Positions 22,637 to 64,000 are shown, counted from the first letter of the stretch. The stretch: DNA of 64,000 bases from Selaginella moellendorffii (GCF_000143415.4 NW_003314311.1:1124769-1188768), one strand, 5' to 3'. Made by a program: numbers and translations. The notes: a model not told the origin generated them from the sequence alone.

Positions 22637-25600
22637 ATGTTTGAGGCTCATGTGAGTGATCGATCGCTAGTTTGGGGATTGGAGACATGGATTGCATTTG
22701 GCGGACTGGATTGAGCTCGCGATTTTCTCCATTTCTTGTTTCTGCAGGTCTTGTATCTTCTTCGCAGATACCTGGGCCAGTATGTGCGGGGTCTCTCAGC
22801 GGAGGCGCTCCAGATCAGTGTGTGGAAAGGTGAGAGCTAGATCTTTTGCTCGGGGGGTGTTGAAATTTTGGTGTTTTTTGGACAGGCGATGTAGTGCTCA
22901 AGGACTTGCAGCTCAAGGCTGAAGCACTGAATGCTCTGAGGCTTCCTCTCACTGTCAAAGCTGGATTCCTTGGGTCTGTCACGTTGAAGGCAAGGCATTG
23001 ATCAAGAAAAGTGTACCTTTGATTCTTATGCTTTCGTTTTTCTTAGATTCCTTGGAACAAGCTTGGAAGAGATCCGGTGATTGTACTTCTCGACCGGGTT
23101 TTTGTTTTGGCGGAGCCTGTTGAAGATGAACAGCTTTTCAAGGTAAGATTTGGTTTTTAGCTTCAAGCGTTACGGAAACTTTCGTGAAATGCGGTTGCAG
23201 AACGAGAACATGGAAGCCTGGCTTGACGCTAAGCGGAGCCAGATTGAGGTTAGTACATACTTGCCTGTCAAGTTTATTCTCAAACGCTTTTTGTGTCTTA
23301 AGGAGCTGGAGATGGCATTGCTTGATGCGAAGGCAGGAAGATCCGGTGATGATGCGGTATGTGCCGCAAAATGCTGTTTGAGGTTTCGTGTTAAATTTTC
23401 TGTTTTTTGCAGTCGCCGGAAAGTAAGTCCTGGTTAGGCTCGCTCGTTGCGACGATCATTGGCAATCTTAAAGTCTCCGTGACTAATCTTCATATTCGTT
23501 ACGAAGACACCCTCAGGTCGCGTTCATCTCTATCAAGTTAAATGCTGGTACTGATACTGGCTTCATTTTTCCGCAACCCCTCCCATCCATTTTGTTTTGG
23601 CGTTACTTTAGCCAAACTTGCCGCTGTGACCATCGACGAGAATGATGTAGAAACCTTCGTAACTAGCGGAGCTCTTGACAAGCTTCACAAGGTATTTTGA
23701 TCAATTTTGTAACGTGTACTTCAGTTTCTTTTTTCCTGCTTGCTGTGCAGTCGCTCCAGCTGGATAGTTTTTCTATCTACCATGACTCGGATACTGGGCC
23801 GTGGACCCTGGAGAAACGGTGGGATGAGATGACATCCAAAGAATGGAGCGAGGTTTGTGTTTTCTTCAATGAAAACAGCATTTTACATTATTATGGTTTC
23901 AGATGTTTGAACCGAGCATTAAAGGGAAAATACAACACAAGTACCTGCTTCATCCGGTTGCTGGCCTGATGAAGTATCACCGGTGTGGAAAGAGAGAGAA
24001 AAGGGATTCTAAAACACCTTTTCAGAAGGCTTCTCTCGTTTTGGATCAAGTGTCTATTGCTGTGTCTGAGGTTGGTTTCTCTAAATGCTACACTTGGGTT
24101 AACTTTCATTCTGTTTTAGGATCAATATCGGGATGGTATTCAACTGTTGGAGGGTGTTTCACGGTACAGGATACGAATGGAGTTCTCTCTCTTCAGACCT
24201 ATGATACCCGTGTTGGTAGATGCTAAGGCATGGTGGCGCTATGCTGGTCGTGCAGTAACGCAGCAGCAGAGAAAGTCAAGGTTCGTTTTGATATTTAACC
24301 GAGTATGCTAAAGCAAATTTTTGCAGGTGTAACTTCTCTTGGGAAAATCTGTCTCGAGCATCAGGATTACGAAAGAAATATGTGGATCTTTATGTTAGCG
24401 GGCTCCAGCAGGGCAAGTTTGACAATTTTGAAATAAGGCAAATCGACCGGGAGCTAGACGTAGAAGTTAATCTACTTTGGAGGTCGGTAGTTTGTGTATG
24501 CTTTCTGTTAGTTGATGGAGAAGTGGTGGCTGCAGAATGCTTGCCCATGCAAAAGTTGAGACGGCAAAGTTAAAAGAGGCAGCCGCGGCCCGGGAAAAGT
24601 CCAGGAAAAGCACCTGGTGGCCATTTGGCGGGTATTGTGGCATATGTTTTCATTTGTTTTACATTAATCGCTTGCTATGCAGGAGCGGCGCTGGTCCAAG
24701 GGCCTCAGTTGCCCAAGGCCCTGAAACGGAAGCGGCCCCAGCGCAACTTACAAAGGAAGAATGGAATAAGATTAACGAGCTTCTAAGCTATCAACCGGGG
24801 CAAGACTATCCGCTGCTTTCTACTCAAGAGCCACAGAACATGCTGCAAACAATGCTCGACGTGACCATAAAACAGAGCTTGGCGTGCATAAAAGACAGCA
24901 CCGATTTGGTCATATTATGTGGGACTTTCTCCAATTTAAACGTTTCTCTCAAGCTGTTCCCGAAAACGTTCTTCTGCGACACTAAGTTGACGTACTATGG
25001 CCTTTCATCTCCAGAGGGGCCTCTCGTTTCGGTAAGCTGAATGGAATTTGCATGTCTTAAGATGATAATATCTGTCTGGTTTGACAGAGCGTGAGTAGAG
25101 AGGGAAGAGCACAAGCGTTGGATTTGACGTTTGTGTATGTTCCTTTCGAAGAACATTTGGATTGGAAGCTGTCTGTCGCGATGTCATCATGCTATGTGAC
25201 GGTAACGTTTTGTGTTGAAAGAGTTCATCCCAGCTTACATAATGCGTGCAGGTTTGGAGATCCAGTTTTGACAGGGTCATGCACTTTATGAAATCTGGCC
25301 AAGCTATGAGCCCGACAGTGGCTTTGGAAACTGCTGTCGCTTTGCAGGTATGAGGCTCCGTAGCAAAAATATATGTTACTCATTTCACAGTGCATGCATG
25401 CCAGACAAAGCTAGAAGAGGTAACGAGGCGTGCTCAAGAACGGATACTATCTCAACTAGAGAAACAGAGAAGGTATTCAAAAGTTTATGCTACTCTTTTT
25501 GGCTTGACTTTTTCTTGCATGCAGGTTCTCTATAGATATTGATCTTGACGCTCCAAAAGTCTTAATTCCTGCACTCAAAGATGAAGGAATTGGAAAGAAA

Positions 25601-30047: not shown

Positions 30048-33000
30048 ATGTTTGAGGCTCATGTGAGTGATCGATCGCTAGTTTGGGGATTGGAGAGATG
30101 GATTGCATTGGCGGACTGGATTGAGCTCGCGATTTTCTCCATTTCTTGTTTCTGCAGGTCTTGTATCTTCTTCGCAGATACCTGGGCCAGTATGTGCGGG
30201 GTCTCTCAGCGGAGGCGCTCCAGATCAGTGTGTGGAAAGGTGAGAGCTAGATTTTTTGCTCGCGAGGTGTTGAAAGTTTGGTGTTTTTTGGACAGGCGAT
30301 GTAGTGCTCAAGGACTTGCAGCTCAAGGCTGAAGCACTGAATGCTCTGAGGCTTCCTCTCACTGTCAAAGCTGGATTCCTTGGGTCTGTCACGTTGAAGG
30401 CAAGGCATTGATCAAGAAAAGTGTACCTTTGATTCTTATGCTTTCGTTTTTCTTAGATTCCTTGGAACAAGCTTGGAAAAGATCCGGTGATTGTACTTCT
30501 CGACCGGGTTTTTGTTTTGGCGGAGCCTGTTGAAGATGAACAGCTTTTCAAGGTAAGATTTGGTTTTTAGCTTCAAGCGTTACGGAAACTTTCGTGAAAT
30601 GCGGTTGCAGAACGAGAACATGGAATCCTGGCTTGACGCTAAGCGGAGCCAGATTGAGGTTAGTACATACTTGCCTGTCAAGTTTATTCTCAAACGCTTT
30701 TTGTGTCTTAAGGAGCTGGAGATGGCATTGCTTGATGCGAAGGCAGGAAGATCCGGTGATGATGCGGTATGTGCCGCAAAATGCTGTTTGAGGTTTCGTG
30801 TTAAATTTTCTGTTTTTTGCAGTCGCCGGAAAGTAAGTCCTGGTTAGGCTCGCTCGTTGCGACGATCATTGGCAATCTTAAAGTCTCCGTGACTAATCTT
30901 CATATTCGTTACGAAGACACCCTCAGGTCGCGTTCATCTCTATCAAGCTAAATGCTGGTACTGATACTGGCTTCATTTTTCAGCAACCCCTCCCATCGAT
31001 TTTGTTTTGGCGTTACTTTAGCCAAACTTGCCGCTGTGACCATCGACGAGAATGATGTAGAAACCTTCGTAACTAGCGGAGCTCTTGACAAGCTTCACAA
31101 GGTATTTTGATCAATTTCGTAACGTGTACTTCAGTTTCTTTTTTCCTGCTTGCTGTGCAGTCGCTCCAGCTGGATAGTTTTTCTATCTACCATGACTCGG
31201 ATACTGGGCCGTGGACTCTGGAGAAACGGTGGGATGAGATGACATCCAAAGAATGGAGCGAGGTTTGTGTTTTCTTCAATGAAAACAGCATTTAAAATTA
31301 TTATGGTTTCAGATGTTTGAACCGAGTATTAAAGGGAAAATACAACACAAGTACCTGCTTCATCCGGTTGCTGGCCTGATGAAGTATCACCGGTGTGGAA
31401 AGAGAGAGAAAAGGGATTCTAAAACACCTTTTCAGAAGGCTTCTCTCGTTTTGGATCAAGTGTCTATTGCTGTGTCTGAGGTTGGTTTCTCTAAATGCTA
31501 CACTTGGGTTAACTTTCATTCTGTTTTAGGATCAATATCGGGATGGTATTCAACTGTTGGAGGGTGTTTCACGGTACAGGATACGAATGGAGTTCTCTCT
31601 CTTCAGACCTATGATACCCGTGTTGGTAGATGCTAAGGCATGGTGGCGCTATGCTGGTCGTGCAGTAACGCAGCAGCAGAGAAAGTCAAGGTTCGTTTTC
31701 ATTAATAACCGAGTATGCTAAAGCAAATGTTTGCAGGTGTAACTTCTCTTGGGAACATCTGTCTCGAGCATCAGGGTTACGAAAGAAATATGTGGATCTT
31801 TATGTTAGCGGGCTCCAGCAGGGCAAGTTTGACAATTTTGAAATAAGGCAAATCGACCGGGAGCTAGACGTAGAAGTTATTCTACTTTGGAGGTCGGTAG
31901 TTTGTTTATGCTTTCTGTTAGTTGATGGAGAAGTGGTGGCTGCAGAATGCTTGCCCATGCAAAAGTTGAGACGGCAAAGTTAAAAGAGGCAGCCGCGGCC
32001 CGCGAAAAGTCCAGGAAAAGCACCTGGTGGCCATTTGGCGGGTATTGTGGCATATGTTTTCGTTTGTTTTACATTAATCGCTTGCTATGCAGGAGCGGCG
32101 CTGGTCCAAGGGCCTCAGTTGCCCGAGGCCCTGAAACGGAAGCGGCCCCAGCGCAACTTACAAAGGAAGAATGGAATAAGATTAACGAGCTTCTAAGCTA
32201 TCAACCCGGCCAAGACTATCCGCTGCTTTCTACTCAAGAGCCACAGAACATGCTGCAAACAATGCTCGACGTGACCATAAAACAGAGCTTGGCGTGCATA
32301 AAAGACAGCACCGATTTGGTCATATTATGTGGGACTTTCTCCAATTTAAACGTTTCTCTCAAGCTGTTCCCGAAAACGTTCTTCTGCGACACTAAGTTGA
32401 CGTACTATGGCCTTTCATCTCCAGAGGGGCCTCTCGTTTCGGTAAGCTGAATGGAATTTGCATGTCTTAAGATGATAATATCTGTCTGGTTTGACAGAGC
32501 GTGAGTAGAGAGGGAAGAGCACAAGCGTTGGATTTGACGTTTGTGTATGTTCCTTTCGAAGAACATTTGGATTGGAAGCTGTCTGTCACGATGTCATCAT
32601 GCTATGTGACGGTAACGTTTTGTGTTGAAAGAGTTCATAACAGCTTACATAATGCGTGCAGGTTTGGAGATCCAGTTTTGACAGGGTCATGCACTTTATG
32701 AAATCTGGCCAAGCTATGAGCCCGGCAGTGGCTTTGGAAACTGCTGTTGCTTTGCAGGTATGAGGCTCCGTAGCAAAAATATATGTTACTCATTTCACAG
32801 TGCATGCATGCCAGACAAAGCTAGAAGAGGTAACGAGGCGTGCTCAAGAACAGATACTATCTCAACTAGAGAAACAGAGAAGGTATTCAAAAGTTTTTGC
32901 TACTCTTTTTGGCTTGACTTTTTCTTGCATGCAGGTTCTCTATAGATATTGATCTTGACGCTCCAAAAGTCTTAATTCCTGCACTCAAAGATGAAGGAAT

Positions 33001-46740: not shown

Positions 46741-47103
46741 ATAAGTGCTTTTTCCATTCCGGGACTAAAGCTGTACAGGAGCTCTCCTTCATTGTTTTAT
46801 ACACATTGCAAATAAGTTTCTTTAATCTTTGGCCAGTTCTTGACGTTTCCTTGTTCGTAGAAATCTGCAGCGATGGTAATTTCAGACGAAAACTTACTAA
46901 AAACTTGTTGTAGCAGATTTCTCGCGTCGTCTACTCCTTTCGTTGATCGCGGTAAAGTTAACGTGGGTAAGTTGGTAGTATCAAAATCTTCGCCAAGCCC
47001 ACATTGATGGACGTGGAGGGCTCGAGCGAGACAATAATTATGTGCTCGCTAGCTATCGGGTCGCGACGAAAAACAGAACAAACTCAGCTCAAATTATTTA
47101 AAA

Positions 47104-47376
47104 TTATGGGTTGCAACAGGGGGGTTGTCCAGGATTCCGCGGTCGGAACTCTTGAAAGAAGTGGTAAAGAGAAAACTAAAGATTTTCATGCGAAAACTTA
47201 CTAGGATTCTGCTGCTCTGGCTTTCTCACAAGTGTTCTCCGGTCATTCCGAAGCTCGTTGATTGTGAGTGGTGATGAAGAACTATCAAAGAGAAGGCGAG
47301 CAGCACCTGAGAAGTGAAGTTCCCAATGGAGTAGTATGAACATCGCCATGATGATAGTGTTGAAAAATCTCCTCAT
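47104..47376 (-). CDS. Small secreted peptide precursor, family member 1 (exons 47376-47202, 47150-47104; 73 aa, ends KFRPRNPGQPPCCNP)
   Basis: Hydrophobic N-terminus MRRFFNTIIMAMFILLHWELHFSGA, GTAAGT donor, 51-nt intron, conserved C-terminal 15-mer shared with paralogs. Confidence 0.72.
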
Positions 47377-47859
47377 TTTTGCTGGTTTTGTAGACCCATC
47401 TCTGCGAGCGCTGGCAATTTATTAGGAGATGCAATGCAACACGCGGTGTAGTGATTGACTAGCCCACTAGGCAGTGGCAAATGCTTACAATCTTCTTCCT
47501 TAAAACAACAAAGCAGTTAAAATCTAAACTTGTAGTTATCAGGAGTTTTTGCATTTGACTCCTCATGTTTCCAGAAACGAAGACTAAGATTTGTCAAGAT
47601 TTCGAACCCGTAAGTTCCATGTTTCTTCATTTTTGTCTGGCTTGGAGAGTTTAGTCCCAGCTCACTTGAGTTAGGCTTGTTCCCTACTCTCAGTTGTCTG
47701 GAAGATGAACTTGACAAATCGTAGTCTTCATTCGACTCAGTCGAAAAGTATGAGTCAAATGCAAAGGCAAGAATACTACAAGTGGTTGCCAATGCCTAGT
47801 GGGCTAGTCAAACATATTGCGTGTTGCAGCACGTGAAAACCACACAATCATGTTCTCAT

Positions 47860-48094
47860 TTGAGGAGATTTTGCAACACTTCCACCGTGGCGATGGTGAT
47901 ACAACATTTGCAACTTAATGCTTCTCTTTTATACTTCTTCCTCAGGCACTACACCTCTCACAATCAACAAGCTTCAAAACGAGTTTGGTATCATCATAAG
48001 CCGCCAAGTCCTAAGTTTTCAGATGAAAACCTATAGTTTTCTTTACCATGCCTCAAATTTTTGTACAATATCAAGAATTTCTACCAACAAGATG
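47860..48094 (+). pseudogene. Degenerate inverted copy of the peptide gene
   Basis: TTG-RRFCNTSTVAMVI..., TTPLTINKLQNE, damaged donor, intron remnant, QEFLPTR*; promoter motif inverted at 47793-47811. Confidence 0.7.
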
Positions 48095-50654
48095 AAGAGT
48101 TTACAACAGTCGGGGCACCGCGCAAATTCCTCACATAGAGATGGGAACCTTTCCGTGGGCACGCTCCACGGCTACCACTACTTGGCGAGTTAGTCCCTCT
48201 TCCACCAATGCTTCCAAGCTTCGAGCGCTGGAGTTGTTCCTGTCGCGCCTGAAAGCAATCTCACATCCTTAAAGCGGATCCCTAATTGATGAGCGCCTGG
48301 ATCAGGAGAGATTTGCTTGGAGATGCGATGGAGCTCGAGTTAAGCTGTTAGAGTCGACGTCGAGCGGAGTATAGCCTGGGCGCTTAAGCCATGGCGCTGG
48401 CAAGCTTCAAACTTCGTCGGCTATAAGTCAGGCGTTGCTTTAACTTCCTCATCCCACAATTGATCACTAAACAAAGGGATGTACTCATGGCCTTGATTTG
48501 TGACCAGCAAGTCTAGATTTGGATTTCATGGGGGAGGGGGGTGAATATAACTTTAGTTTACACAATGGAAAAATTGGTAGATTTAGTGTAGAAGTCTTTG
48601 GCTCAATAAAAGTTGTTAATTAATAGTAAATGAAAACATTAATATATTTGAATGAGGCTTTTAGCTCAATAAAGATTGTTAATCAATAATCAATAAAAAC
48701 ATTAATATCTCTAAAGGGGGGTAAGTGTAGCCTTGGTCTATACAATGAAAAGATTAGTAAATTTAATATGGAAATACCCACAATCACATTTGGAACATTT
48801 TCAATTGACAACCTCACAATCTTGAACATTTTTATATAGAACATTAGTGCATCTAGAGTCTCTAGATGAAGTTTTATACATATTTCAAATTTTGTATCGT
48901 TTTGTAATGAAAATTCATATTGCAAGGGTATATATTTTCTGAGATAACCCGAGCTAACCATAATTCACGCTAATAGTGTGCAAATTAAAAATAGCAAGTG
49001 TTCATCAGCATTTACGAACCTTACAAATTTTGTGAAACTTGATATTTGGTGCTTATGCCCAGAATGGGTAAGCTTGCTATAGCTTTATTAAGCTTGAAAT
49101 ATTCACAATCAATTATCAAATGAAAATGTAAAAATAAATTCACCTAGATATGTTTTCCACCACTACTCATTTCTAGAACATTGTTTTATACATCCTTCAT
49201 ATATTTATATGCTTGGAGTTGTGAATGTATCCTTTCTCTTTTCTTTCTAGTAATAACAATACTAATCTTTCACTAAAATATCATTTTATTTATACTATAA
49301 TGAATAAAAATAATTTACCTTTCTTCCCCTTTCTATCACGGTTAGTTCTGTTGCTTTGTTTGCCCTAAACATTTATAATATTTGGGAACATTCTTTTATA
49401 TATATGAAAAGATAAAAAGATGTGTGTGTATTATGTATTTTACTTTTGCATATATTATGAAAGGTATATAAAAAATTTACTTTTTTTTGTTAAAAGGTAC
49501 TTTTCCAAAAATTACATTTCACTTGCAACATAAATTAAAAAAATTTTAAGCAAAAATATAATTTGAAATTAAATCCATTGGTAAATTTATGCTTTTAAAT
49601 TAACATCCAAACTTTAACACTAACAATCTCCAACTGCCAAAATATCATGAATGCATGCTGTTGAAATAACTTAATGGCTGGATTGAAGCTATGCTTGTGT
49701 CCTCTCTATCCCGAGGCACTCACTCTCACACTATTGATTCTTTTGTTTTGTTTTTTTATAGAATTTTTTTGTATGGAGCAAAAAAGAAAAAAATTGCTGT
49801 TTTTTTGGCACTGGGCTAATGTTGATCTTTCTCTTTTTTAATTTTTACAGGCTTCAATAAACACTTGCCTGGAGAAGCGTCAAGTATTCTAATGTCAAGC
49901 GTTTCAAGTCAGTAGTGACCAGAGCAATCAGGAGGATTGGCGTCCTCACCAAATGTTTCTGAGAGCCCACTCTATCTTCAAGTACTTACAACGAAATCAC
50001 TCTTGTTTCTGCAAAAAGTGGACGCCAGATGCATCATGATTGAGTTCATCGAGCTCAGTCGACCAATGCTTGTACCCACAGCCCAAGCTTTCACGTCGAC
50101 ATTACTTGGTTCTTTAAAGACCTGTGGAGTTCTTCGCTCAAACTCTACTACCAGGAAAATCCGGAGTGTTGCAACGTCATGACCATGCCAGGTCTGTCCC
50201 GTCACAGGAAATGACCTGGATGAACATGATCCTGCAAGAAGCTGTCCTCAAGTTGGAGAGTACACGGTAGAGCATCGTTGGTTGCTCCTCCAGAGCCTGG
50301 TGCAGCTGCTTGCTTCCAACGTAATTGGGTTTACTGCTTAGCAAAAGGGAGCTATTTGGGATGCCGTACGTGGTGGTTTCTTCTTGGGAGGCCGATATCA
50401 AACTGAATCCTGGAGGGGCTCATTCAACAAATCTAACACTGTTTATTGTTTAGTCTAGCTCTTTGCCAAGAATTAGACTAAGGAGACAGACAAGTCTCTG
50501 ACCTCAGCTGCCCACACTCCCATCCCCCACTATCCTTCCAGAGCTTGTGGCTTACCACGCCCCAGGGAGACAAGTGTTTGGTTTGCAAACCTCTAAACCA
50601 ATTTAATACATTGGTCTTAAACCAATTTTAAGGTTTAATTGGAGAGCGAGAGGT

Positions 50655-50770
50655 GAGGGGCGCATAGCCTTGGCACAAGCTGGGATCGTTAATTGCTCTC
50701 GCCATTTGCGGCACATGCACCTAGCCTGGCACAGCTTGATTCCTGACAGCCTGAAGAAGACGAGCTGCCA
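50655..50770 (-). pseudogene. F-box gene fragment
   Basis: LVFFRLSGIKLCQARCMCRKWRE matches the N-terminus of 52154-53203, then frameshifts and ends. Confidence 0.75.
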
Positions 50771-52153
50771 CCCTCCTCTTCGCCACATCCTACTTGATAA
50801 TTTTGATAGACTTAAGGGTGCGCTTTATAAACGCATTCGTGATTCCAAATGATGTGACGAGAATGAGCTAGAGGCCTTGACAGAAAAGGTGAGCGGCAGG
50901 CTCGGAACTGTCACCTGACAGGGTAGAGTGCAGTGGCGCTTACCAAGCCAAATGGCTCCGATGATCTCGGTTACTACCGCCATGGCCAACTTTGGTGAGC
51001 GAACCTAGCCAGAATAATAATCAACGCGTCGATTCATCATAGGATGAACAAGTATCAGTTCATGCAGATGGTTGCCAAGCATTCCGTGCTTACACGTGTC
51101 CATCGCAGGTACGATGAAAGCTTGAAAGCGGGCTTAATAAGCTATGCCTTATGGGCTATGACTGGAAGTATTGGACCGTCTTTGACCACAGTTCTTCTTC
51201 TGGTGTTGTGTTACAGAACAAGAAACATAGCAAACGAGAAATGTTTTATCACCATATACAAAACCTTACATAACTTGAATATATATATAGAAGAGGAGGA
51301 AACAACAATGTATGTAGACATTGTGTTTCCAACGTATACACCGACACTCGACTTCCCAGGGTTGTTCCTTTTGGCAAATTTATCACCACCAATCATGTTG
51401 CAGCTTCATGAGAAATGGTCACACAATCAGCAAGAATGAAGATATTTTGTAACACTTATATGGTGATAAAACATTTCCAACTTGCTACTCTCCGCAGTCT
51501 CATAACCACAAGCTTCGAAACCAGTTCGGCTGCAAAGTCACAACTTTCTTCTGTTTCATATTCATTCATATAGTTCAAGTAGTACTAACCGCGACACAGC
51601 TTCAAAAATCACTGCCACGTCCCCACTCCAGCTCAAACGTAGAAATTGTTTCAAGATTACATAGGCACAAACATAATCTCACCAACCTGAAATAGAACAT
51701 TATAACTCTGGCCGAAGATGGCTGGCGCAAGATTCACCGAGCGACTAAGCAATTCGAGCGCATTGCACAGTGCACGGCTTGAGATCGATCGACCGAAACT
51801 AATAAATCCGCGAGCGCAGGCTACTTCACAAAGAGAGAAGTACCCATTATTACCATTTGAGCTCCCAAGACCACCAAGCCGGTAGACCAAAATCTCTCCT
51901 GCCTTGGCACAATCATGAAACTCATCGGAAGACAAACCTTTTCTTGCTTCTGTGGAAGGAGGCGCGTTTATCACACCCGGAAATTCGGCACCACTTTTCT
52001 TCCTCTCGCGAACTTTGCACACTTTTCGTCAGTGTCACAAACATGCTCAATCTTGTTTTTCCCAAAGCAGCGATTTACCACCCGATGCCGATCATCACAG
52101 CACTAGCTCACAGCTCCTGGATCTTCTTCGAGAAGAGCTCCCAGTTTTCAGCA

Positions 52154-53203
52154 CTAACAAGAGAACCAAGCAAGCTCCTTGAATCCTGTCACACCGTCGG
52201 GCGCCTCCTCCAATGACCAGCTCCTGGAATCGACTCCAAAGTGCACAATCCGCGAGTTAACCCGGTCAACCAGCCATATACTGTTGCTCCCATCAGTGCA
52301 CACCTCTCTCGCTCTCACCAGCAAATCATCAAACTCTTCGTCTCGCCTCGAAACAATCTCCCACTTGTCTCCCCGCCTCTCAGCGACAATCAGCCCCTCG
52401 CGATCTTCCGCCTGCCCTTCGTCAGTAACCACGAACAGCCGATCCCGATCCAGCTGAAGCAAGGACCACGTCTCTCCGAACTCCAACTCGCGGCTATCAA
52501 GCTTGAAGATGCGCCAGGAATCATGCCACACGTTGTATCTCGCGAGGCTCCAGGTATCCGTGCACAGCACCACCACCTCGCCGTGATCCAGGATCGGATA
52601 GAACCCATTCTCGTCGAGCATGGCCCCTGAGTCTGGGTAGTCTTCGTTCTCACGCAAGGACCACTCGCCCGACGCCGAGTCGTAGATGTAGAAGGCGAGC
52701 GATGGCCGGTCGAAGCTAGCGACGCAAAACTCTCGCGTGGATCGATCCCTCTCGCGGCAGTACACCGTCAAGTCCGTGTCATGGTTGCTCACTGGCGGCA
52801 AAGGAACTCTCACCGGGGAGGAGTTGAGATCGCTGTAGCGCCACACGAAGATGGAGGATGGCGCCCACCACTTCGCAAAGGTGGCCAGGCACAGCAAGCC
52901 CGCGTCGGTGCTGGCGATGGTCATGTCCGTGGGGAGCGTCTGGAAGTGGCGCCACTCGCAGCGCGGGGAATTCGGCTCCACCGGCTTGACAAGGAGGGAT
53001 CCAGAGTCGAGGAGGAGGCAGAGGTGAGGGATGCAGCGGTGGGAGCGCGCGTAGCCTTGGCGGAAGCTGGGATCGTCGATTGCTCGTCGCCATTCGCGGC
53101 ACACGCACCTGGCCTGGCACAGATCGATCGCCGACAGCCTGAAGAAGACGAGCTCCAGCTCTGCCACGAATCTGCCGCTGGAGATCGCTCCTCTTTGCGG
53201 CAT
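52154..53203 (-). CDS. Intronless F-box protein with probable beta-propeller (kelch/FBA-like) C-terminus, 349 aa
   Basis: F-box signature ELVFFRLSAIDLCQARCVCREWRRAI..PSF; ASTDAGLLCL, IYDSASGEWS, YNVWHDSW repeats; GC-rich open frame. Confidence 0.88.
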   Translation of the reverse strand: MPQRGAISSGRFVAELELVFFRLSAIDLCQARCVCREWRRAIDDPSFRQGYARSHRCIPHLCLLLDSGSLLVKPVEPNSPRCEWRHFQTLPTDMTIASTDAGLLCLATFAKWWAPSSIFVWRYSDLNSSPVRVPLPPVSNHDTDLTVYCRERDRSTREFCVASFDRPSLAFYIYDSASGEWSLRENEDYPDSGAMLDENGFYPILDHGEVVVLCTDTWSLARYNVWHDSWRIFKLDSRELEFGETWSLLQLDRDRLFVVTDEGQAEDREGLIVAERRGDKWEIVSRRDEEFDDLLVRAREVCTDGSNSIWLVDRVNSRIVHFGVDSRSWSLEEAPDGVTGFKELAWFSC

Positions 53204-54325
53204 CCTGCGTGCCCTAGGGCGGGAATGTAACCTTGTGCCCTAATTCTAATTGCAAGCCAAAGTATAATCTGGTATATCTAGCTGTTTATAAATTATAAAC
53301 ATATTTATAATTTAAACACTCCAAGTATATTTTTTATATTCTTTGGTTGATATGGCTTTTGCAGGTTTTGTAACCCTCTCCAAATAGTACTGAATGATAG
53401 CATTGATATTATATTTGAAGTGATGGCTCTAGAAGATCTACAGGAAGCTCATCTTGAGTGTTGCAAGCAGGTAGGAAGCTCGTCTAATCTCTGCTTCATG
53501 GTCAGCATCTCAAGCATGTCAATCAGGCAGTGGAGCTCAAGTAGCATTCCTATGTGGAGAGAATGCAAAAGATCACTTCTTTTGTTGCTAGTCCCTTCCA
53601 AGCCTACAACCTCCTTCTAAACAGTGCTGTGCAAATCCTGCCCATTGAGCCCAACCACCTGGGTGGTGATCATGGGATGATTGTAACGCTACTGCCTTAT
53701 AGAGGTGCTGCTGTTCTTGGAGAGTGGAGATTGGATTGGACCGGTCAAAGGACTTACCCGCCCATGGGCGATCGTTGTTTTCCTCCTGATCTGGGATTTT
53801 CCACGTTCATCCGTCAGAGTCATTCCACAATCTTCACACCCGAACCGTTAGATTTTGAATGGACGGATTAAATTTAACAGCTATCTTATGCAAGAAAAGA
53901 CTCTGCAGTTCACATAAAGCACCAAAGAGACCCCACAAAGAATATGAAAAGATTCTGTTTCTCTCATCCTTTACACAATAAGGGATACAAAATCGATCAA
54001 GAAAACTCCCTCTGCTACTGATTTCAGCTGCTAGCGATGGAAGATCCAGCGACTCATCACCAGCGCCATTCTAAAATAGCGAATTTGCCCCGGTATATTT
54101 CTTGGTTTGTAAGCTTGCTGAAACGTAGTAGATGTAATTGCAATGTCTCCAGTCTCTGTGCGAATCTTACAATAAAAATCTAACATAGATCAAACTCAGG
54201 ATGAAATTTTAATATCATTTCGAAAATATTTTAAAAAATTATAAATCCTACGTTCAGTATTTAAATAAATAACCAAATGCCGCAATCAGCAAATTATTCA
54301 TGAGTTGAATCTTTGATTCTTTCCT

Positions 54326-54636
54326 TTATGGGATGCAACAGGAGGGTGGCTGGCGACTCTTCGGTCGAAAATCTCAATCGACTGCTAGAAAATTGAGCAA
54401 TAGAAAACTAAAAGACTTTCACACGAAAACTTACCAGGAAATTGCCAGTCCGCATTTGAAGGGGAGTGCAGCAGTTTTTGCATTCTCCACACATTTCGAC
54501 GCTCGCTGACTGTGAATGGTGCAGTGGTTGATGAAGAACTATCAAAGAGCACACGAGTAGCACCTGCCAAGTGAAGCTCCAAATGTAGTAGTATCACCAT
54601 CGCCATGATAAAAGCCTTATGAAATCTCCTCCTCAT
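54326..54636 (-). pseudogene. Peptide family member 2 (exon 1 54636-54435; ends DFRPKSRQPPSCCIP); premature TGA with the first acceptor
   Basis: Same signal peptide and phase-1 intron. Acceptor at 54385 gives AVD*DFRP...; an alternative GAG acceptor just before the motif would bypass the stop. Confidence 0.65.
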
Positions 54637-54839
54637 CCTTTCTGACCCATCTCTCCCAGCACTATCCATTTAAAGCTGCAATGTAGCATGCGGTGTATTG
54701 ACTAGCCCACTAGGCAATGGCAAATTCTTACTCGTAAGCTTCTTCGTTAAAAGGCAAGCTTTTTCGCAAAGAAAGCAGTTAAAATTTAAAACTCGTGGTT
54801 ATCCGCCTGAAAAAGGAGATTGAAGATTTGTCACTAGGA

Positions 54840-56580
54840 CACAATGTTGAAGGATTGGTCTTGGATACTAAGTATAGTATCTTTGACTTTGGTTAGCTTG
54901 GTTGCAAGAGAGTTTTGAGTGGTGATTCACTCTTGCTTTCTTTTAGCTTTGTTCTGATGTTGATGGCATTGAGGTGATGCCTTGTCATTGATATTATTGA
55001 TGTTGAGATTCAGGTGAGATGATATATCTATCCTTAGGATTGATATTGAGTTTCATTGCTCTCGATGAAGATAGTGTTGATGATTTGGCCATAGCTTTGT
55101 GTTATTGGCATTCGTGCATTTGTTAGTTAACAACTGTGTTGACGTTCAAACAAACTGAGTGGCAAGTTTGAGTTAGTTGTGTTCTAGATGAGATTATTTA
55201 GTAGAGGTTGAGCTTTGGCTTTTCCTTGAAAAGTGATTCAGTCGTGGACTATGCTAACTCTACAAGTGGAAGAGTTAGTGATCGATATTGGAATGTTTGA
55301 ATCCTGCTTGGATTTGAGTTGGAATATATCGATCATTGATGATTCTTTTTTGTGCTTGTTATGAAGTGAGTTACGTCTTGCTATAGATGGATTCATGGAG
55401 GATCGTTTGGTGATCACTTGTTGAGCATAGCTTCATTATGCTTAGCTTTTGGATTGATGCAGATATGCTCTTCATTAACTTTGGCATTATGAAGTTTAGC
55501 TTATGGATGTGTTGAGGAGGATATTGTGGGTTGTACCATGGTTTCTTCTTTACCATTGAAATTGGTTCATGCGAAACTTGTGATCATTGTTAGGCAAGAC
55601 TTGGCTATAGACTTCTTCGAGCTTTTGGTTCTTTGAGTTTTATGCTTATTGTTCCATTTGTTAGAAGTTGTTGGGGAAGGCATTTTAGCTTGTTAGCTTC
55701 GATGTTGAAGTTGGCTCTTGCATTTGGCAATCATTGGTAATGATTGACTGTCATCTAGGATATTGATTATCCTTGTCAAAAGTGTTGCTTGGTTATTGTT
55801 GATATAGAATGATTCGCTGTTTTTCGGGATGGTAGATTCTTTTTTCAACGATGATTCAGCATCTCTTTATTGATGGGATGATTGATGTTCTTTCATGATG
55901 GTTAGTTGTTCTCCTTAGTGGCTTTTGGATTTTTGCAATACCACATGTTCTTTGTGGTTTGCTCTGGATTGGTCTTTTGGGTTTGAGACGTCGGTAGGAT
56001 GTTGCTGACACTTGCTTGAGCAACTCTAGTTCCTTGGTATTATTGACCAGAATCTATAAAGATTAGCTAGTGCAATAGTTAGCATGAACGAGTGTTTGTT
56101 GACCATGCAACATTCATTCTATTCTGTTGATTGTTGCTCGAGTTAGCTTTGATAGATTCAGATGTTATTTCCTTCGGGTACTACATTCGCGAGCATTTTG
56201 CTTGCTAGTCGATGATCCTTTGTGTACTATGAGTTATCTTTCGTAAGTTGTTTGGCATACTGTCTGCCATCTTCGATAGTTAGATTTCATCATTGAGTTT
56301 CCTTGATGATATACTAGCTATTGAATTTTGTTGGCTGGTGAATCCTATGTTTTCCAGATCTTGGTGGTTCCTATACTCTACTATTCGTTTATCAGATGAT
56401 AACTTACTTGGAATACTTTTGTGTTCTAATCTAAGATTTAATCATTGGTAATTAAGTCTCTAAGATATCATTGTTTATGACTTTGATATTGTCCATCTAT
56501 TGATCTTTGAGTTTGGGCCAGTATAGGCAGACTGGCTTCGACACTTTGTGTGCATGGTGAAATCTCTAGTCATGGGGTAG
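54840..56580. mobile_element. Probable highly degenerate transposon remnant
   Basis: No ORFs, strong T/G strand skew like the gag remnant at 58.1-59 kb; it interrupts the upstream homology of peptide member 2. No motif recognised. Confidence 0.3.
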
Positions 56581-57025
56581 CTACTGTCAACTGGTCACAT
56601 AACCCGCCTCTCTGTCGATGTTCCTTATTCCATTAAAAGGGCGTGACCGTGTAAACAACTCTAACTGCCTATTTACAGTAGTCTATCTAAACCTTACCGA
56701 CGGGTTTGGTTTCTTTGTTTAGGAGGGTTGGGGCCTCTGGCTTCTCTCTCTATGTTCCTGCGGGCAGGGCATATCACACTTTTGTAAGCTGGGTGACTCC
56801 CAGAGCAGCAAGGGTGGCTGAATCCGTTGGTCATTTCCTTGTCGGCGACGGCCGGAAGGTGTCTGAGCTGGTAGCGCATCCACGTTAGACAAAGAGGTTG
56901 CTCCTTAACTCATTTAAGTTGGTGCATTTCTCACATAGTGTGAGTACCGTGAACTTTTTCTGGAGTTGTTTCTTTGGCGGTATTCTAGACTCGAGTATGC
57001 ATCGACGAGGACGTCGATCTTCCCT

Positions 57026-57830
57026 AAGGGGGGGAGAGTGTCGCGAATGTGACTTCGGGTATCGAAAGTTACCTGTCGGCTAGTCCTTTCAGATATTCTT
57101 TCCTTATTGCCATGATGGCAAGAGGTCGGTATTGCTGGGCCCGTTATCAGTCTCCGCCTAAGCTAGTTGAGAAACTGGTCTTCGCGTGTGCACTTGACCA
57201 GATGGGCATAAGGACGGAATTCCTACGTGCTATTTGTCAAGCATACTTGACCTGGTTAGAGAAACTCATTCGTTGACTTGCACTTGCTAGTGTTGGGAAC
57301 CCCTGCGATATTGAGTTTGGTCCCTCAATATCGTTAGATGATAGCTTACCGTGTCTGCCAAACACCCTTGCTATCATGCCCTTTGTGTTGGTCTCATTTC
57401 AGTCCCAAATGCTATTTATGGAAAGTGTCCAGATTTGCTCATTTGGCATATCTACGGAATGTAGAAATTGTCCTGAACACAATGGTGTTCGTCCCGTGTC
57501 CAAATTCGCAATCTAAGGACATTCCATATTTAGTAAGTTTTGAGCTTGTCCCAGAGACTAACTCTTGATACTAAGGGAGGGTTGGGGTGAAAGCCCAAAG
57601 CGTGTGTTCCTCAAGGGGGGGGGGGGCTGTGGGGGGTTCCAAATGTATAGTAGGGATAGTGGGTAGGTCGGGCATGGCCATCCAACCTGAGGCATAGTCT
57701 AACTCCCGCTTGCGTGCCTGTCCTTGTTCTGCGTCCGGCTTGGGGCTAAGCCCAAGTTCCATTCCATGCTAGTTGGTGGAGTACCCATGTCCTCGCGTTA
57801 GGCCACCGGTATGCCGAAATAGTGCCAGAC
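57026..57830 (+). mobile_element. PPT plus partial LTR of a second, related gypsy family (3' end not defined)
   Basis: AAGGGGGGGAGAG then TGTCGCG at 57039; blocks at 57553-57670 and 57781-57806 are homologous to the copy A/B LTR. Confidence 0.7.
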
Positions 57831-58389
57831 TCCGTTTGGCTCCGTTTTGCGTGCTGGTCCTGGCATTGGGATGCTGGTTACTCTAGGACTGTTCCAAGTT
57901 GCTCCGGGCCCCTGTCCCTTCGCTCCTTGGGCTTTATGCTTGGGAGTTGCTCCGTGGTTCAGTTCCATCACTCTTTGGCTCCATGCTTGGGAGTTTGGCA
58001 CCGTTCCTTCGTTCAGCGGCCCAAGGCCCTGAACCTCGGGTTCCTATGGACACGTGGCATGTGACACGTGGCATTTGTCACGTGGCACAAAGAGGGTTTA
58101 GGTTCCGCTTCGTGGTGTTATCTTATGGTAAATCACTATAGGATAAAGGGTCAAAACCACGTGCGCTACATTGTCGATCATTGTAGTTGTTGTTGTAGTC
58201 GTTATTGTAATTGTTGTAGTTGTTGTAGCAAGGTTGATCATTCCATTGTCGACTTTGGTGTTGGAAGTTGTTTCTTGGTAGTCTCCAGTTTGTCGGAGGT
58301 TGTGCCTGGTAATTGTCGAAGTATTGATTTGGATATGGTTGTCGAAACTGCTGTCGGGGATAGTTTGAGACTTGTCGAACTTCTGGAGA

Positions 58390-58520
58390 ATTTCGAAATC
58401 TGCAAGTCTTGGCATCATGACCTTCTTTGGTACAGATCTGGCATTTGGAGATTTAGAGCTTGCAGTCACTTGCTAGATGTCCTTCGTTCTTGCACTTAGC
58501 ACACCAAATTCCAGATCAAA
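58390..58520 (-). pseudogene. Gag remnant with two CCHC zinc knuckles
   Basis: Minus strand reads WCAKCKNEGHLASDCKL*ISKCQICTKEGHDAKTCRFR. Confidence 0.8.
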
Positions 58521-60169
58521 ATTCTTTGATGTCGGCCTTGGCTTTTCCCTTGAGCTTGTCGATTGTTTTCCTGAGTTTTCGAAGTTTTGACTTGGTGCTC
58601 TCTCTAAGTTCATCATTGGAGTTGTCGTCGGAACTGCTATCAGAATCTGAGTTATCTGTGTCATCTACTTGTGCTGTCATTCGTCGAGCTTGAACATCTT
58701 GAAGGGCTCTTGCGAGTTCGAGATAAGTGGCAACGTTGATGTGTGTTGCCGCTTCTCAGAGGGATCGTCGTAGGCCTTGCATGTACCATTGGTAAAGTAA
58801 TGTTTCGGTGGCACTGTTGCCGCATTTGTTGGCATGTCGAGTGAAGGTTTGAGTGTAGTCGTCGATGGATTGACCAGACTTCTGCTTGAGTTTTTGGATC
58901 TTGTGAAGTCATTGGCTTTGAGTGAGGGAAGACTTGAATCGGTCTACGAGCTTGAGTGTGAGGTCGTCAAAACTTGTATTTGAGGAAGTGTTTGAGCCCA
59001 TTCGTTGGCTCTATTTCGAAGGGTACATCAGAAGTAGTATGGAAGTTCGGTCGTCTGACCGTTGATTGTTAAGGACTGATCACCGGGAGAGTGAGAGAGA
59101 GAGAGGGAATATTCTGGTCCTCAGAATATTCCCCGTCTTCCTTGTATAAAACCCTTGCCTCACAAGGGCGAGGGGGGGCATTTTTGCAGAGAGCAGTGAA
59201 GCATTTCTCGTGTTTGAGCGAGCGTTGGGGGAGGCGCCCCTCCTTTCCCCAACAAATGGTGAACCCAGCGTGACGTGCAGGACTTTCTGAAGCGTCATTT
59301 CTCTCTTTTCTTTTGGCCGCAGAGTTTGGGAAGGAATTCCTTGTTCATTTTGCGGTGGTTTTCTTTGATCTTGAGTGTGTTGGATAGGTCTGGAGCTCCT
59401 CTTTCCAGCAAGGTATGGCGCTCATCAAGCCGTGCAGTATTTGAAGAGATACAACGTTTCTTGGCTCGGTCGGATGAGCATTTTGGGGTTTTCACTTTCT
59501 CGCCTGGATCCTCGGCCGAATTTCTCAAGGTAGTGCATTTGGGTTTGTAGATCTGGCCTAGATCTATGAGTAGTGGTAGTTCTTGGCACTAGATTTGGGA
59601 GAATTGACGGCATGCAAAAGGATTTTCTTCTCCGGCTAGATTGGGTTATCTTTGTGGTAGGAATTCATGCTCCTCCAGGCTTGGTTTTGGATGCCGTTTA
59701 TTTCTAGAGGTGCTCCTGGTCCTAGGCTTTCGAGAAGTACCAACGGCGCCTTAGTGTCGATCTACATCATGGACATGCACATGTTTTTCCATAATGTTGG
59801 CGTTCTGGGCTACCTCTTCGTGGATTTTAGGGAATATTGAGGCAGTTTCTTCCCAAATTCTTGCGATATAAGGTAGACGGGGCTGAGCTCTTTCCAACGA
59901 GCCCACCAACAATCAAAATGGAGAAGGATCGAGACTAGAGGACTCATTTTTCTCTTTTGGGTTAAACTTCGTTGGGGGTTCCTTGGGAACGAAGCAATCT
60001 TCAAGGAACAGGTAACCGTAGGAACAGGAACAGGAGGAGCAGGAACAAGCGTTGGCGTAGAAACAGGGACAATAGGAATAGGCACAGGGATAGGAGTTGG
60101 TGTTGGAGCAAGTGCAGGAGTAGGAGCGAGAGTAGGGGTTACCGGTTACATGTCACAGGTCCCCGGTTA

Positions 60170-60305
60170 TCGGCTACCGGCTACTCCCGCGGCTACTCCA
60201 GTGGCTGCTCCAGCGACTACCCCGATTACCGGCTACCGGCTACTCCAGTGGCTACTCCAGCGGCTACTCTAGTGGCTCCTCCAGTGGCTACTCCAGTGGC
60301 TACTT
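60170..60305. repeat. 12-bp degenerate tandem repeat (GGCTACTCCAGT)
   Basis: Directly visible; preceded by a low-complexity AGGAAC/AGGAGC tract at ~60000-60140. Confidence 0.75.
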
Positions 60306-61468
60306 CGGCGGTCGGGTCAAAGGCATTTTGAGCAACTTGAGCACTAGCCTACAGTCTTCTTACTCCTGTCAACCCAGTTGCCTTGACCGGGCATTTGCAG
60401 TGTTCAGGGTATTTGATGCCGGTACAAACTAGACGTACGACGAATTGGCACCCTTTTACCATACCTCAAGGCCCTAAGTACGGAGTAAACTTTCCAACAT
60501 CCAAAGGCAGCTTAGGTACGACACTGCACCTTCTCAGGCCGAGTCCTCTTCCTCCTCGACAGATTCCAGTGACTTAGATCTACGAGCTATGGCGCAGCCA
60601 CCCTTAGCTCGACCTCAGCTCCATGTTCTGTAGAACGGGAGTGATCTGCCGGTCTTTTCAGGTGTTGGAACAGTCTCTCCAACATCACATATTAGTCGCT
60701 TTGATTACTACTGCACGCCAGATTAAGCGCTAGCGAATGCAGCACCTCCCAAGATTAACCCCGACCCAGGATTTCATGAGACAGCCAGCCACCTTGCATT
60801 GCAACGCATTAAACGTCTCCTTGATCTCTCGACCTCAGTCACTAGATTTTATGTACGGTTGCCACCACTATTAATTGAAAATATTCGGTTCGTCCCTTAC
60901 CCCAATGCAAGAGTACTACTTCCAACGAAGCAAAGAAATACCGGGCATTGCTTTAAGGGCTAAGGCTGTTCGTTGTGCCTGCCTGAACATATGCGGAAAA
61001 ACCTTAAGTTTTATACTTTAAGTTGAAGACATTCGTAGGTTGGCACCCAAACCGGTCACCAAAGACGACCAGTGTTGCTTGAAGTATGAGGCAAAGAGAT
61101 AACCACAAGGCTATAACTAGCCTTTGACGGGGCAGTTCAATGTATTGCATGAAGTTGCAAATGCAGTACCATCACTATGTGCAAATTGGACCAAATTGAA
61201 CAGTATTCTTCTACCACCTTGCTACCGTCAACTTTGCAACTCTATAAAACTATGTGATGGATGAATGTAACTAACTGTCAAAGTGGGATTGGAACACACA
61301 CCCTCGTGAGGTTGAGTCTACCAACTTAGACCGCTTGGCCATCCTGACATTTTGCCCTACTTAACACAGGGGTGTAATCAATGAGTATTCAACCACATGG
61401 CAATGCATGCTGGCTTGTAACATGATATATAAGGCATCCAAGCAATCAGCAGGCATTATTAAGCTCTA

Positions 61469-61765
61469 GTGAAGTCTGCTTTGGTGGTATTTCTTGTTGC
61501 ATTTGCCAAAGCATTGCCTTTTTCAGCTTTATGTGGAAGGGAGCTTCTGTCTTTGGATAATTGTGTTGCTGAGCATGATTCATCAGTGGTAGAACCATTT
61601 TCTAGTTCTCTAATGCATGGGATGGATGATAATGATCATGAAGATGGGGTTCATGGCCAAAGCAAGCAGAGGAATAATACCAACAACAACAACATCAAAT
61701 CAACATTTGCAGAAAGAAGATTAGGGATCATGAACGAAAAACGTAACAAATTTAGAATAACATAG
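61469..61765 (+). other. Possible small secreted-protein ORF with GTG start (98 aa)
   Basis: TATATAA at 61426-61432; KSALVVFLVAFAKALPFSALCGRELL looks like a signal peptide plus cleavage site, but there is no ATG. Confidence 0.35.
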
Positions 61766-61855
61766 CAAATTTCATGTGTTGTCATCAACAAGGTACCAGC
61801 AGCTTCTTGACCAAAGCTTGAGGCAGCCCAGTTTTCGGCTGTGATTCTTCGTCCG

Positions 61856-62112
61856 TTAGAGGTTGTAACAGGAGGGTGGCAATCCTTGAGCAGCTGCTAG
61901 AAACTTGAGCAAGATCAGAAAGTGAAAGATTTTTATTCGAAAACTTACTAAGATACCCGTCCTCAGACTGCCACAGCTCTCCACTCATTTTGAAGCTCGT
62001 TAATTGTTGATGAAGAACTATTAAAAAGAACGCAAGTACCACCTGAGAAGTGACATTCCAAATGTAGTAGTATCACCATCGCCGTGATAAAAGCCTTATG
62101 AAATCTTCTCAT
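61856..62112 (-). pseudogene. Peptide family member 3, frameshifted
   Basis: MRRFHKAFITAMVILLHLECHFSG...; stop at 61963 before the GTAAGT donor; exon 2 remnant ...LPPSCYNL*. Confidence 0.75.
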
Positions 62113-63375
62113 CCTTTCTGGTTTTGTGAGATCTCGGCGAGCACTATACATTTATCACAAGCTGCAATGCAACACGCGGCCACTAGGCAAATGGCTTCTT
62201 CGTTAAAAGGTAAGCTCTTAAAAAGATCTAAACTCGTGGTTATCCGCATGATAACGGAGATTGAAGCTTTGTCAAGATCAAGTCGGACACGGGACTCAAG
62301 TTCTTCACCCCATGCATCTGGAGCGTCTTTTTCGTCTTGGTCCACCACCCCAGGCTCGCCTTCGGAAAAGCCCCGGTTCTGACTTAATTACGTAAATTTG
62401 CACCTCCACAAAAATTTACATGACTTGAATAAATATATGTACTACTCGGCAAACTAGGATTGTTCCTTGTGGCAAATTTACACAGAATCAAAAAGAGATT
62501 ACCACCAATCATGTGGGATAGGAGTTCACATGTTGCCGCACAATCAGCAAGAATTGTAACACTGCTGGTGATAAACATTTGCAACTTTCTACTTGGTTTC
62601 TCTTTGACTTCTTCCGCAGTCTCACAGCCACAAGATTCAAAACCAGTTCGCAAAGTTTTCTTCTAACCCAAAATATATTTCTCATTCATGTAAAGTATGC
62701 TCGAAGATCAAACATGACTCGTACAAACTGAACATGGACTTTCCCCTGAGAACATGACAACTTGCACTGGACAAAGTTTGATCCTGCTGTGTTTCGTATG
62801 TAGTCGTTCATATAGTTCAAGTAGTATTAGAAATAGTTTCAAAAACACAATCTCACCAACACCAGATGGTTCTCCAAGACCGAAAGAAAACGTTACAACT
62901 CTGGTCAAAGATGGTTCAGGACTTCCAGTCGTAACAACAACAGGGGATGCATTCAAGCCATTCTAGTGTCCCTGTGTATTAGTTAAGCCCCAGCCATTGC
63001 ATGCGCTCAGATTTCCTGCAACGCACATTTGTGACCACGGGATGCTTGGCCACCATCTGCATGAGCAGCTCGTTCATTCTCACGATGGATAAATTGCCAC
63101 CCAATGCTTGATTATTCGAGAGAATAATCAGCTGGCCTTGTCCATTCTCTCACTGAAGTTGGCCGCGAGCTCCACCGAGTAATTCTAGAGTTCTAGAGCA
63201 TAATAGTCTTGCAGAAGTATGCTACCTTTCTATTTATTCCGGACTGTACGGAGCTGTCCATTGTTTTATACAAGAGAAAAATGTTAAGCATATCTTTGTG
63301 ATTCTTAGTTCTTTATCTTTGTGTAGCCAGCATTTCCCGTCGTGAGATATGGGATGGGGCTTTTCGAATCGCGTT

Positions 63376-63660
63376 TTATGGGTTGCAGCAGAGGGGTGGC
63401 TGACGATTCCCCGGTCGAAATTCTCCAAATTCGGCTGGAAATTTATAGCGATGGTAAAGAGAAAACTAGAGATTTTCAAACGAATACTTACTAGGACTTG
63501 GAGGAGGAGCTTCCTCCAGCAGCTTTCTCACAATCCCCTTGTTGATTGTGAATGGTGCAGTGGCCGAGGAAGAACTACCAAAGAGAGGCCATACGAAGTG
63601 AAGATGTAAATGTAGTAGTATCACCATCGCCACAATGAAAGTGATGCAAAATCTCCTCAT
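63376..63660 (-). CDS. Small secreted peptide precursor, family member 4 (exons 63660-63492, 63434-63376; 75 aa, ends EFRPGNRQPPLCCNP)
   Basis: Signal-peptide-like MRRFCITFIVAMVILLHLHLHF; GTAAGT...TTCCAG 57-nt intron; intact frame into the conserved C-terminal motif. Confidence 0.78.
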
Positions 63661-64000
63661 TCTTGCTGGTTTTGTGACCCATCAATCAATTTATCACGAA
63701 TGCAACACGTGGTCAATTGACTAGCCCAGCAAATGCTTGCTTCTCTAAATTTTCACGTGCACGAATTTAGTCATACCGCCTGAAAATGAAGACTACAGAA
63801 TGTCATAATTGACATCTTCAAGCTGTTCCTGGTTGACTTTTACAATCATAGTTGGTCAAATTATTTATAGTTTAATAGTTCAGATTCCATGTCCACCTCC
63901 ACCTTTCAATGTGTTGTGACAGAACACTTGATTAGCCTGTATTTTGAGAGGAACTTACTGCTTAACACAGCTAAAAAAACGTGATCAAATTGTGTCCAGT

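Follow-up and report, generated by a model that had tools for sequence, protein, structure and literature searches.

An unannotated cluster of tiny two-exon genes in Selaginella moellendorffii with secreted-peptide-like precursors ending in Cys-Cys-x-Pro

Organization of the cluster

A 64,000-nt stretch of Selaginella moellendorffii DNA (GCF_000143415.4 NW_003314311.1:1124769-1188768), called here the window and numbered from its first letter, harbors an unannotated cluster of tiny two-exon genes, whose secreted-peptide-like precursors end in Cys-Cys-x-Pro. The first-pass annotation of this DNA had reported five loci, m1 to m5, together with their products, and all five can be read from the sequence. 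They are paralogous units of ~400 bp each, as revealed by MAFFT and BLAST. In the MAFFT alignment of the five units, the homology extends from ~100-170 nt upstream of the ATG through the stop codon, and between-unit BLAST E-values of 1e-24 to 1e-47 place the similarity well past chance. The units share one order of elements: an upstream box (consensus GCCAnTGCCTAGTGGGCTAGTCAA), a GTGTTGCATTGCA-like element, a TATA-like ATAAAT located 29-48 nt upstream of the ATG, a leader exon that begins with MRRF and includes AM(V/F)ILLH, a GTAAGT donor that opens a phase-1 intron of 51-62 nt, and a last exon of 47-59 nt, which terminates in FRP..(Q)PP.CC.P and the stop codon. F-R-P, P-P, C-C and the final P are present in every readable copy. 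The alignment and a heuristic analysis of the leader uphold the original description: the genes form an unannotated family, are tiny, have two exons separated by a phase-1 intron, and encode a signal-like leader.

BLAST and alignment also reveal two decayed leader-exon fragments, f6 and f7, which bring the number of copies in the window to seven. The m1/m2 and m4/f7 copies form head-to-head pairs. The birth-and-death pattern proposed at first holds, and its tally of two intact and three damaged copies gives way to two intact (m1 and m5), one doubtful (m3) and four dead ones (m2, m4, f6 and f7). In every pair the homology ends precisely at the stop codon: the 300 nt downstream score z < 3, against z values of 9-19 for the introns. 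This abrupt end may coincide with the border of the duplicated unit or with the limit of constraint. Near the two ends of the unit, the promoter element GTGTTGCATTGCAT (47431-47443) resembles the coding end CTGTTGCAACCCAT (47107-47119) at 10 of 13 positions and in equal orientation, and likewise in m3 and m5; the likeness may be due to chance, or may hint at the mechanism of duplication.

The intact copies and the expression of m5

The m5 copy (63376-63660, minus strand) encodes a spliced product of 75 aa that ends in EFRPGNRQPPLCCNP, its C-terminus reading TEFGEFRPGNRQPPLCCNP before the stop. Exon 1 (63492-63660) codes for the leader, which starts with MRRFCITFIVAMVILLHLHLHF, followed by the spacer. 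It is separated by a 57-nt GT..AG intron (63435-63491), whose removal is shown by RNA contigs and reads, from a phase-1 exon 2 (63376-63434) that codes for (T)EFGEFRPGNRQPPLCCNP and the stop codon and is covered by spliced RNA contigs and reads. The 3' untranslated region (UTR) has at least 82 nt (63294-63375), as a contig of run X24 runs to 63294. A promoter-like region of putative function (63688-63723) contains the box core TGGGCTAGTCAA, a CACGTG and the TATA-like GATAAATT (63688-63695), which lies merely 29-35 nt upstream of the ATG.

Expression was assessed by mapping reads and contigs on 61700-63900, a segment that comprises m4, f7 and m5. The runs were X24 and X26, RNA-like Logan contigs from two studies; X8, a declared RNA-seq run from a third study; and X27, which provided a DNA-like contig. 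The predicted junction 63492/63434 is used in RNA from all three studies. The joint 63434/63492 skips 57 nt bounded by CT..AC on the plus strand, that is, GT..AG on the minus strand. It is found in a 315-nt X24 contig with a depth of 28 and zero mismatches to the window, in an X26 contig with a depth of 4.3, and in four raw X8 reads with four distinct starts. The RNA contigs show the spliced form only, and the intron is kept solely in the X27 contig. The latter differs from the window by 16 single-nucleotide polymorphisms (SNPs) in 589 nt and by an 8-nt deletion, and it is therefore a different allele or accession. Thus, m5 is transcribed and spliced. At 63645, 15 nt into the open reading frame (ORF), the X24 contig stops with a 20-nt inverted copy of 63600-63619. 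This may be an artefact, of assembly or of a cDNA hairpin, or it may hint at an mRNA 5' end downstream of the first ATG. In addition, five X8 reads match only 31 nt of the m5 3' UTR (63328-63358) and carry unrelated sequence on both sides; another transcript from elsewhere in the genome shares this segment.

The second intact copy, m1 (47104-47376, minus strand), yields an in silico spliced product of 73 aa ending in KFRPRNPGQPPCCNP. Its exon 1 (47202-47376) codes for the signal-like leader MRRFFNTIIMAMFILLHWELHFSGA and then for a variable spacer. The 51-nt intron (47151-47201), delimited from the sequence by GTAAGT..TTCAAG, has a 5' half that is alike in all copies, and exon 2 (47104-47150), also in phase 1, adds (K)FRPRNPGQPPCCNP and the stop codon in a spliced translation that stays in frame. 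Upstream, a promoter-like region of putative function (47417-47473) holds the box TGCCTAGTGGGCTAGTCAA at 47455-47473 and the TATA-like TAATAAAT at 47417-47424. Run X4, which is guessed to be RNA, contains 18% of the sampled words from 46900-48200, a hint that m1 may be expressed.

The frames of m1 and m5 both enter the Cys-Cys-x-Pro exon via non-homologous acceptors located 12 nt apart. In its 5' half, GTAAGTTTTCGnATGAAAATCTTTAG, the intron is as well conserved as the exons (47170-47201, 63460-63491, 48012-48040 and 54405-54434), and intron retention would give similar tails in m1 (SKFSHENL), m5 (SKYSFENL) and m2 (PKFSDENL), each followed by a stop. Either the crowding of splicing signals in so short an intron or an alternative product may account for this conservation.

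Doubtful and decayed copies

The m3 copy (54326-54716, minus strand) comprises an upstream box (54698-54716), exon 1 (54435-54636) and exon 2 (54326-54372), which would end in DFRPKSRQPPSCCIP. With the distal acceptor (ttgag, 54373/54372), the intron would span 54373-54434; the DFRPKSRQPPSCCIP end depends on that weak acceptor. Two proximal acceptors, ttttctag and cag, located beside a pyrimidine tract and homologous to the acceptor actually used by m5, lead to an in-frame TGA. The status of m3 is considered doubtful because only the distal acceptor gives the Cys-Cys-x-Pro end.

Four copies are dead. The m2 pseudogene (47793-48094, with the named locus at 47860-48094, plus strand) lies head-to-head with m1 and retains an intact upstream box (47793-47811). 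It carries TTG for ATG and frameshifting deletions, including one of 17 nt, it has lost the donor, and its exon-2 region has diverged. The m4 pseudogene (61856-62112, minus strand) has a TGA 18 nt before the donor, an 18-nt alignment gap that deletes the FRP.. codons, and a change of Cys-Cys to Cys-Tyr; its depth is zero in X24, X26, X27 and X8. The remaining two are the decayed leader-exon fragments, both on the plus strand: f6 (~51417-51530), recognized by BLAST, alignment and the ORF list and still reading ..RMKIFCNTYMVIKHFQL.., and f7 (~62539-62650), head-to-head with m4 and with zero depth in the mapped runs.

Features of the predicted precursors

The intact and possible precursors (m1, m5 and perhaps m3) have 73-82 aa. 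Their leaders were assessed heuristically, by Kyte-Doolittle hydropathy and the (-3,-1) rule. The n-region has a charge of +2 to +4, the 8-residue hydropathy peak reaches 3.0-3.6, and the uncharged core has 12-15 residues in m1 and m3 and is longer in m5. Sites compatible with the (-3,-1) rule are found at residue 25-26 in m1, m3 and m4 (SGA/A, AGA/T and SGG/T) and at 28-34 in m5. By this heuristic, the n/h/c organization of the leader matches that of a cleavable signal peptide. Two His residues of the leader, H17 and H21, are invariant. Beyond the leader, the protein is hydrophilic and rich in Pro (7-9 residues), and the mature part of m1, m3 and m5 has exactly two Cys, which are adjacent and located four residues from the end.

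Searches for relatives and neighbourhood of the cluster

Homology searches used the leader exon as the query. Pfam analysis of the exon-1 ORFs returned nothing real, a YezG-like match at E = 0.18 being noise. No homologue was found among 5.8 billion protein clusters by a word-index search, either with m1 exon 1 or with an alignment of four leader exons, and when the four-leader alignment was run with HMMER in full against 1.84 billion representatives, no credible homologue emerged. Two HMMER matches, of 410 and 554 aa, are long proteins matched in 5-6 short stretches and were dismissed as low-complexity noise. The ESM Atlas feature search gave no usable match, exact look-up in the protein collection retrieved none of the unspliced ORFs or their neighbouring ORFs, and in the literature no description of a Cys-Cys-terminated peptide family was found. 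These very large protein searches agree with the lineage specificity assumed at the outset, and the family appears to be restricted to Selaginella, with no detectable relatives outside the genus.

An intact single-exon F-box gene of 349 aa (52154-53203, minus strand; Pfam F-box) is located between f6 and m3, and at a distance of 2.3 kb there is a 107-nt fragment of a second F-box copy (50660-50766; 87% identity). The best relatives of the F-box gene are S. moellendorffii proteins with 62-70% identity, and an exact match to its protein is not present in the public collection. It seems that this region has seen duplication of the F-box genes as well as of the peptide units. Two other S. moellendorffii loci, located beside paralogous F-box genes (GL377673.1 and GL377602.1), contain no peptide unit, and a 106-aa gene beside one of these F-box loci is unrelated. 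Between m3 and m4, ~3.3 kb (54845-58172) match S. moellendorffii GL377673.1 (1649-8100 of the analysed locus) with 83-88% identity, one part of it twice; to judge from this match, the segment is probably a dispersed repeat or a transposon. Farther away, among many other long ORFs at 1-46 kb, there are three plus-strand ORFs starting with ATG, each of 167 aa (8365-8868, 24537-25040 and 31947-32450), which look like repeated retrotransposon material.

Proposed function and constraint on the family

The proposed model, to which about an even chance is given, is that of a real, weakly constrained, lineage-restricted family of secreted pre-pro-peptides; at present it is an expressed candidate secreted-peptide family with a putative function. 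According to this model, the family would have spread by local duplication, which includes the head-to-head pairs, and would be evolving by birth and death. The m1 and m5 genes, and perhaps m3, would encode a signal peptide at the N-terminus, probably cleaved near residue 25 (SGA/A, AGA/T), then a Ser-rich, charged variable spacer, and finally a Pro-rich C-terminus of 14-15 residues, x-F-R-P-x-(N/S)-..-P-P-x-C-C-x-P, provided by its own tiny exon behind the phase-1 intron. The precursor would enter the secretory pathway and be trimmed to a short C-terminal peptide, whose prolines may be hydroxylated and whose adjacent Cys would be oxidised, an intermolecular disulfide dimer being more plausible than a vicinal ring. 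The peptide is proposed to act extracellularly, in signalling or in defence, and its exact sequence would be weakly constrained, as in fast-evolving secreted peptide families.

The main alternative is that of a young orphan, or proto-gene, family, which is transcribed, with one unit spliced, and whose peptides have no selected function, so that the copies drift to pseudogenes and the intact ones are the survivors so far. It is a real possibility, albeit a somewhat unlikely one, and most of what weighs against the proposed secreted-peptide family speaks in its favour. All the selection comparisons use the three readable paralogues m1, m3 and m5 and have low power. Over the 45 nt of the C-terminal 15-mer, the nucleotide identity of these copies is 70-80%, against 67-74% in exon 1, 68-84% in the intron and 68-81% from the box to the ATG. 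The 15-mer is thus conserved no better than exon 1, the intron or the 5' region, and the higher conservation relative to intron and 5' DNA that the first-pass annotation had set in advance as a test failed to appear. The ratio of non-synonymous to synonymous substitution rates (dN/dS, Nei-Gojobori) is 0.47-1.08 in the 15-mer (0.5-1.1 when rounded), 0.55-0.79 in the leader and 0.57-0.76 overall, so that several comparisons, the 15-mer included, come near 1. In the X27 allele, m5 exon 1 has four SNPs, three of which are non-synonymous (C5S, H19Q and S55N), and none of the 16 SNPs falls in exon 2, a deficit that is not significant (P ~0.19). Most copies are dead (four of seven, with m3 doubtful), and the orphan view also accords with the empty protein searches. 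Further points against the proposed function concern expression, which is shown for one member only, m5, and whose RNA contigs, spanning 63294-63645, end 15 nt short of the ATG at 63658-63660. Because these contigs stop at 63645, translation of m5 from the first Met is a prediction, and the charged n-region depends on it.

Other observations speak for constraint and against a family without selected function. In a codon-unaware DNA alignment, the exon-1 indels among m1, m3 and m5 (9, 9, 6 and 15 nt) are without exception divisible by three. Indels of the intron and 5' region have sizes of 1, 2, 4, 5, 7, 11 and 13 nt; where a pseudogene, m2 or m4, takes part in the comparison, sizes of 17, 10, 8, 5 and 2 nt are found. 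Since the exon-1 indels stay in frame, unlike those of the intron, the 5' region and the pseudogenes, the pattern argues for coding constraint, with the intact copies apparently held as coding genes. Monte-Carlo simulation indicates that, at the observed divergence and with substitutions alone, a neutral ORF of such size stays open with a probability of ~0.2. When the requirement for in-frame indels is added, a rough estimate gives ~0.02-0.04 per copy and ~0.01-0.03 for at least two intact copies of seven. The different acceptors by which m1 and m5 hold exon 2 in frame also count against the orphan family, and so does the perfect conservation of the promoter box. This 19-nt box is the longest conserved stretch of all: it is identical at 19 of 19 positions in m1, m2 and m3, a run length matched by 0 of 5000 shuffles, and m5 has the 12-nt core as well. 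Because of this identity, together with the core in m5, the box points to a constrained cis-element, putative as its role is.

A stronger version of the proposed peptide function is considered unlikely. It holds that the family encodes functional lycophyte-specific Pro-rich signalling peptides, with a Cys-Cys dimer or a vicinal disulfide, which would be either an independent invention of the spikemosses or an ancient sister of CEP that predates seed plants. Plant ligands of leucine-rich repeat receptor-like kinases (LRR-RLKs) are not known to use such disulfide chemistry.

It could also be argued that function does not reside in the 15-mer, but in the N-terminal part (the leader plus LFDSSSS..TIN), for instance as a membrane-anchored micro-protein, or that the product is a defence-type peptide whose signal is conserved and whose mature part evolves fast. 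The longest invariant runs are located in the upstream box and the leader, with none of 8 nt or more inside the 15-mer, and the longest invariant coding stretches, GAGGAGATTT, TGGCGATG, ATACTACT and TAGTTCTTC, belong to the leader and the Ser run. The invariant H17 and H21, and a conserved leader followed by a variable remainder, a pattern that defensin-like and other Cys-containing secreted peptides display, fit this explanation as well. Against it, the dN/dS of the leader is not clearly below that of other parts, the strongly hydrophobic core has ~13 residues, which is short for a membrane anchor, and the C-terminal F-R-P, P-P, C-C and final P are kept in all readable copies, and this explanation is taken to be quite unlikely.

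Two further possibilities were rejected: transposon cargo as the main explanation, since no repeat extends past the unit edges in a BLAST of 40-64 kb against the whole window (a comparison that included no dedicated inverted-repeat search) and there are only seven copies in the window; and a hairpin or miRNA precursor formed by the inverted m1/m2 pair, as its arms are only 67-76% identical and its promoters face outwards from the centre.

Comparison with known peptide families

The candidate secreted-peptide family shares with the general class of small post-translationally modified secreted peptide precursors a precursor shorter than ~120 aa, a signal-like leader and, in the case of m5, its own transcribed gene. 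A C-terminal domain more conserved than the variable region, as found in that class, is not seen among the three paralogues, a comparison of low power, and a mature part with two adjacent Cys fits neither the Cys-poor nor the Cys-rich division cleanly.

CEP genes are typically intronless, and in the Selaginella family a phase-1 intron precedes the peptide exon. CEP peptides are perceived by LRR-RLK XI receptors of the CEPR1/CEPR2 type. The likeness to CEP lies in the build of the precursor, which is small and has an N-terminal secretion signal (here by heuristic prediction), a variable region and a Pro-rich C-terminal 15-mer, and in F-R-P at positions 2-4 of all members, the only motif common to CEP and all of them. 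The three readable 15-mers open with x-F-R-P, as does CEP1 (DFRPT...), and m1 also has N6-P7-G8 and P11. Arabidopsis CEP1 is DFRPTNPGNSPGVGH and RGF1 is DYSNPGHHPPRHN (PMC8462819, Table 1). Identity to CEP1 is 7/15 in m1, which is borderline for a Pro/Gly/Asn-rich peptide given the many families and offsets compared, and 4/15 in m3 and m5. Neither m1, m3 nor m5 has a domain close to the canonical DFRPTxPGxSPGxGH. The GxGH C-terminus, common to CEP and PIP/PIPL ligands (PMC8462819), is absent from the members, and the readable ones end instead in C-C-(N/I)-P with two adjacent Cys. The CEP-like residues of m1 most simply appear derived. A tree from the 5' region, exon 1 and intron, without the peptide exon, reads ((m2,m5)82, m1, (m3,m4)99), and because m3, m4 and m5 have RQPPxC nucleotides in common while the tree sets them on either side of m1, the N-P-G..P of m1 is probably a change on its own branch, by convergence or chance. 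CEP genes were reported to be absent from S. moellendorffii in hidden Markov model surveys (PMC4197245), and their origin has been put in gymnosperms or seed plants (PMC8462819). Hence, the 7/15 likeness noticed at first is confirmed for m1 but the kinship with CEP does not hold up, and divergent true CEP homologues, or members of a CEP/PIP/IDA/RGF superfamily, which would make CEP-type ligands older than seed plants, are a very unlikely identity for these genes.

A relationship to RGF/GLV/CLEL peptides, also raised by the first-pass annotation, was abandoned. Apart from the secreted-precursor architecture, the likeness consists of Pro-Pro at positions 9-10 in m3 and m5 (P10-P11 in m1), a trait that is present but weak alone in a Pro-rich peptide. 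The RGF/GLV/CLEL motif has an N-terminal Asp-Tyr with a sulfated Tyr (PMC8462819). The Selaginella 15-mers lack Tyr and carry D-F in m3, E-F in m5 and K-F in m1; they contain Cys, and they end in Pro after Cys-Cys-x, without a C-terminal His-Asn. With GxGH, Asp-Tyr and His-Asn all absent, and only a general secreted-peptide build in common, filing the family as either CEP or RGF was rejected.

Like the fast-evolving defensin-like and NCR peptides, the family occurs in local clusters with numerous pseudogenes, a birth-and-death pattern, and its leader is conserved whereas the remainder is more variable. Those peptides differ from it in having 4-8 Cys and a folded domain, whereas here two adjacent Cys are located in a Pro-rich tail. 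Peptide-hormone families of non-seed plants are poorly catalogued, and genes this small elude annotation. Moreover, roots arose independently in lycophytes, so that cell-to-cell signals of this lineage are of interest. The family provides a useful test case for the birth and loss of such small genes, and, with the build of a peptide-hormone precursor and an unprecedented Cys-Cys-x-Pro end, it is a candidate for lineage-specific signalling or defence.

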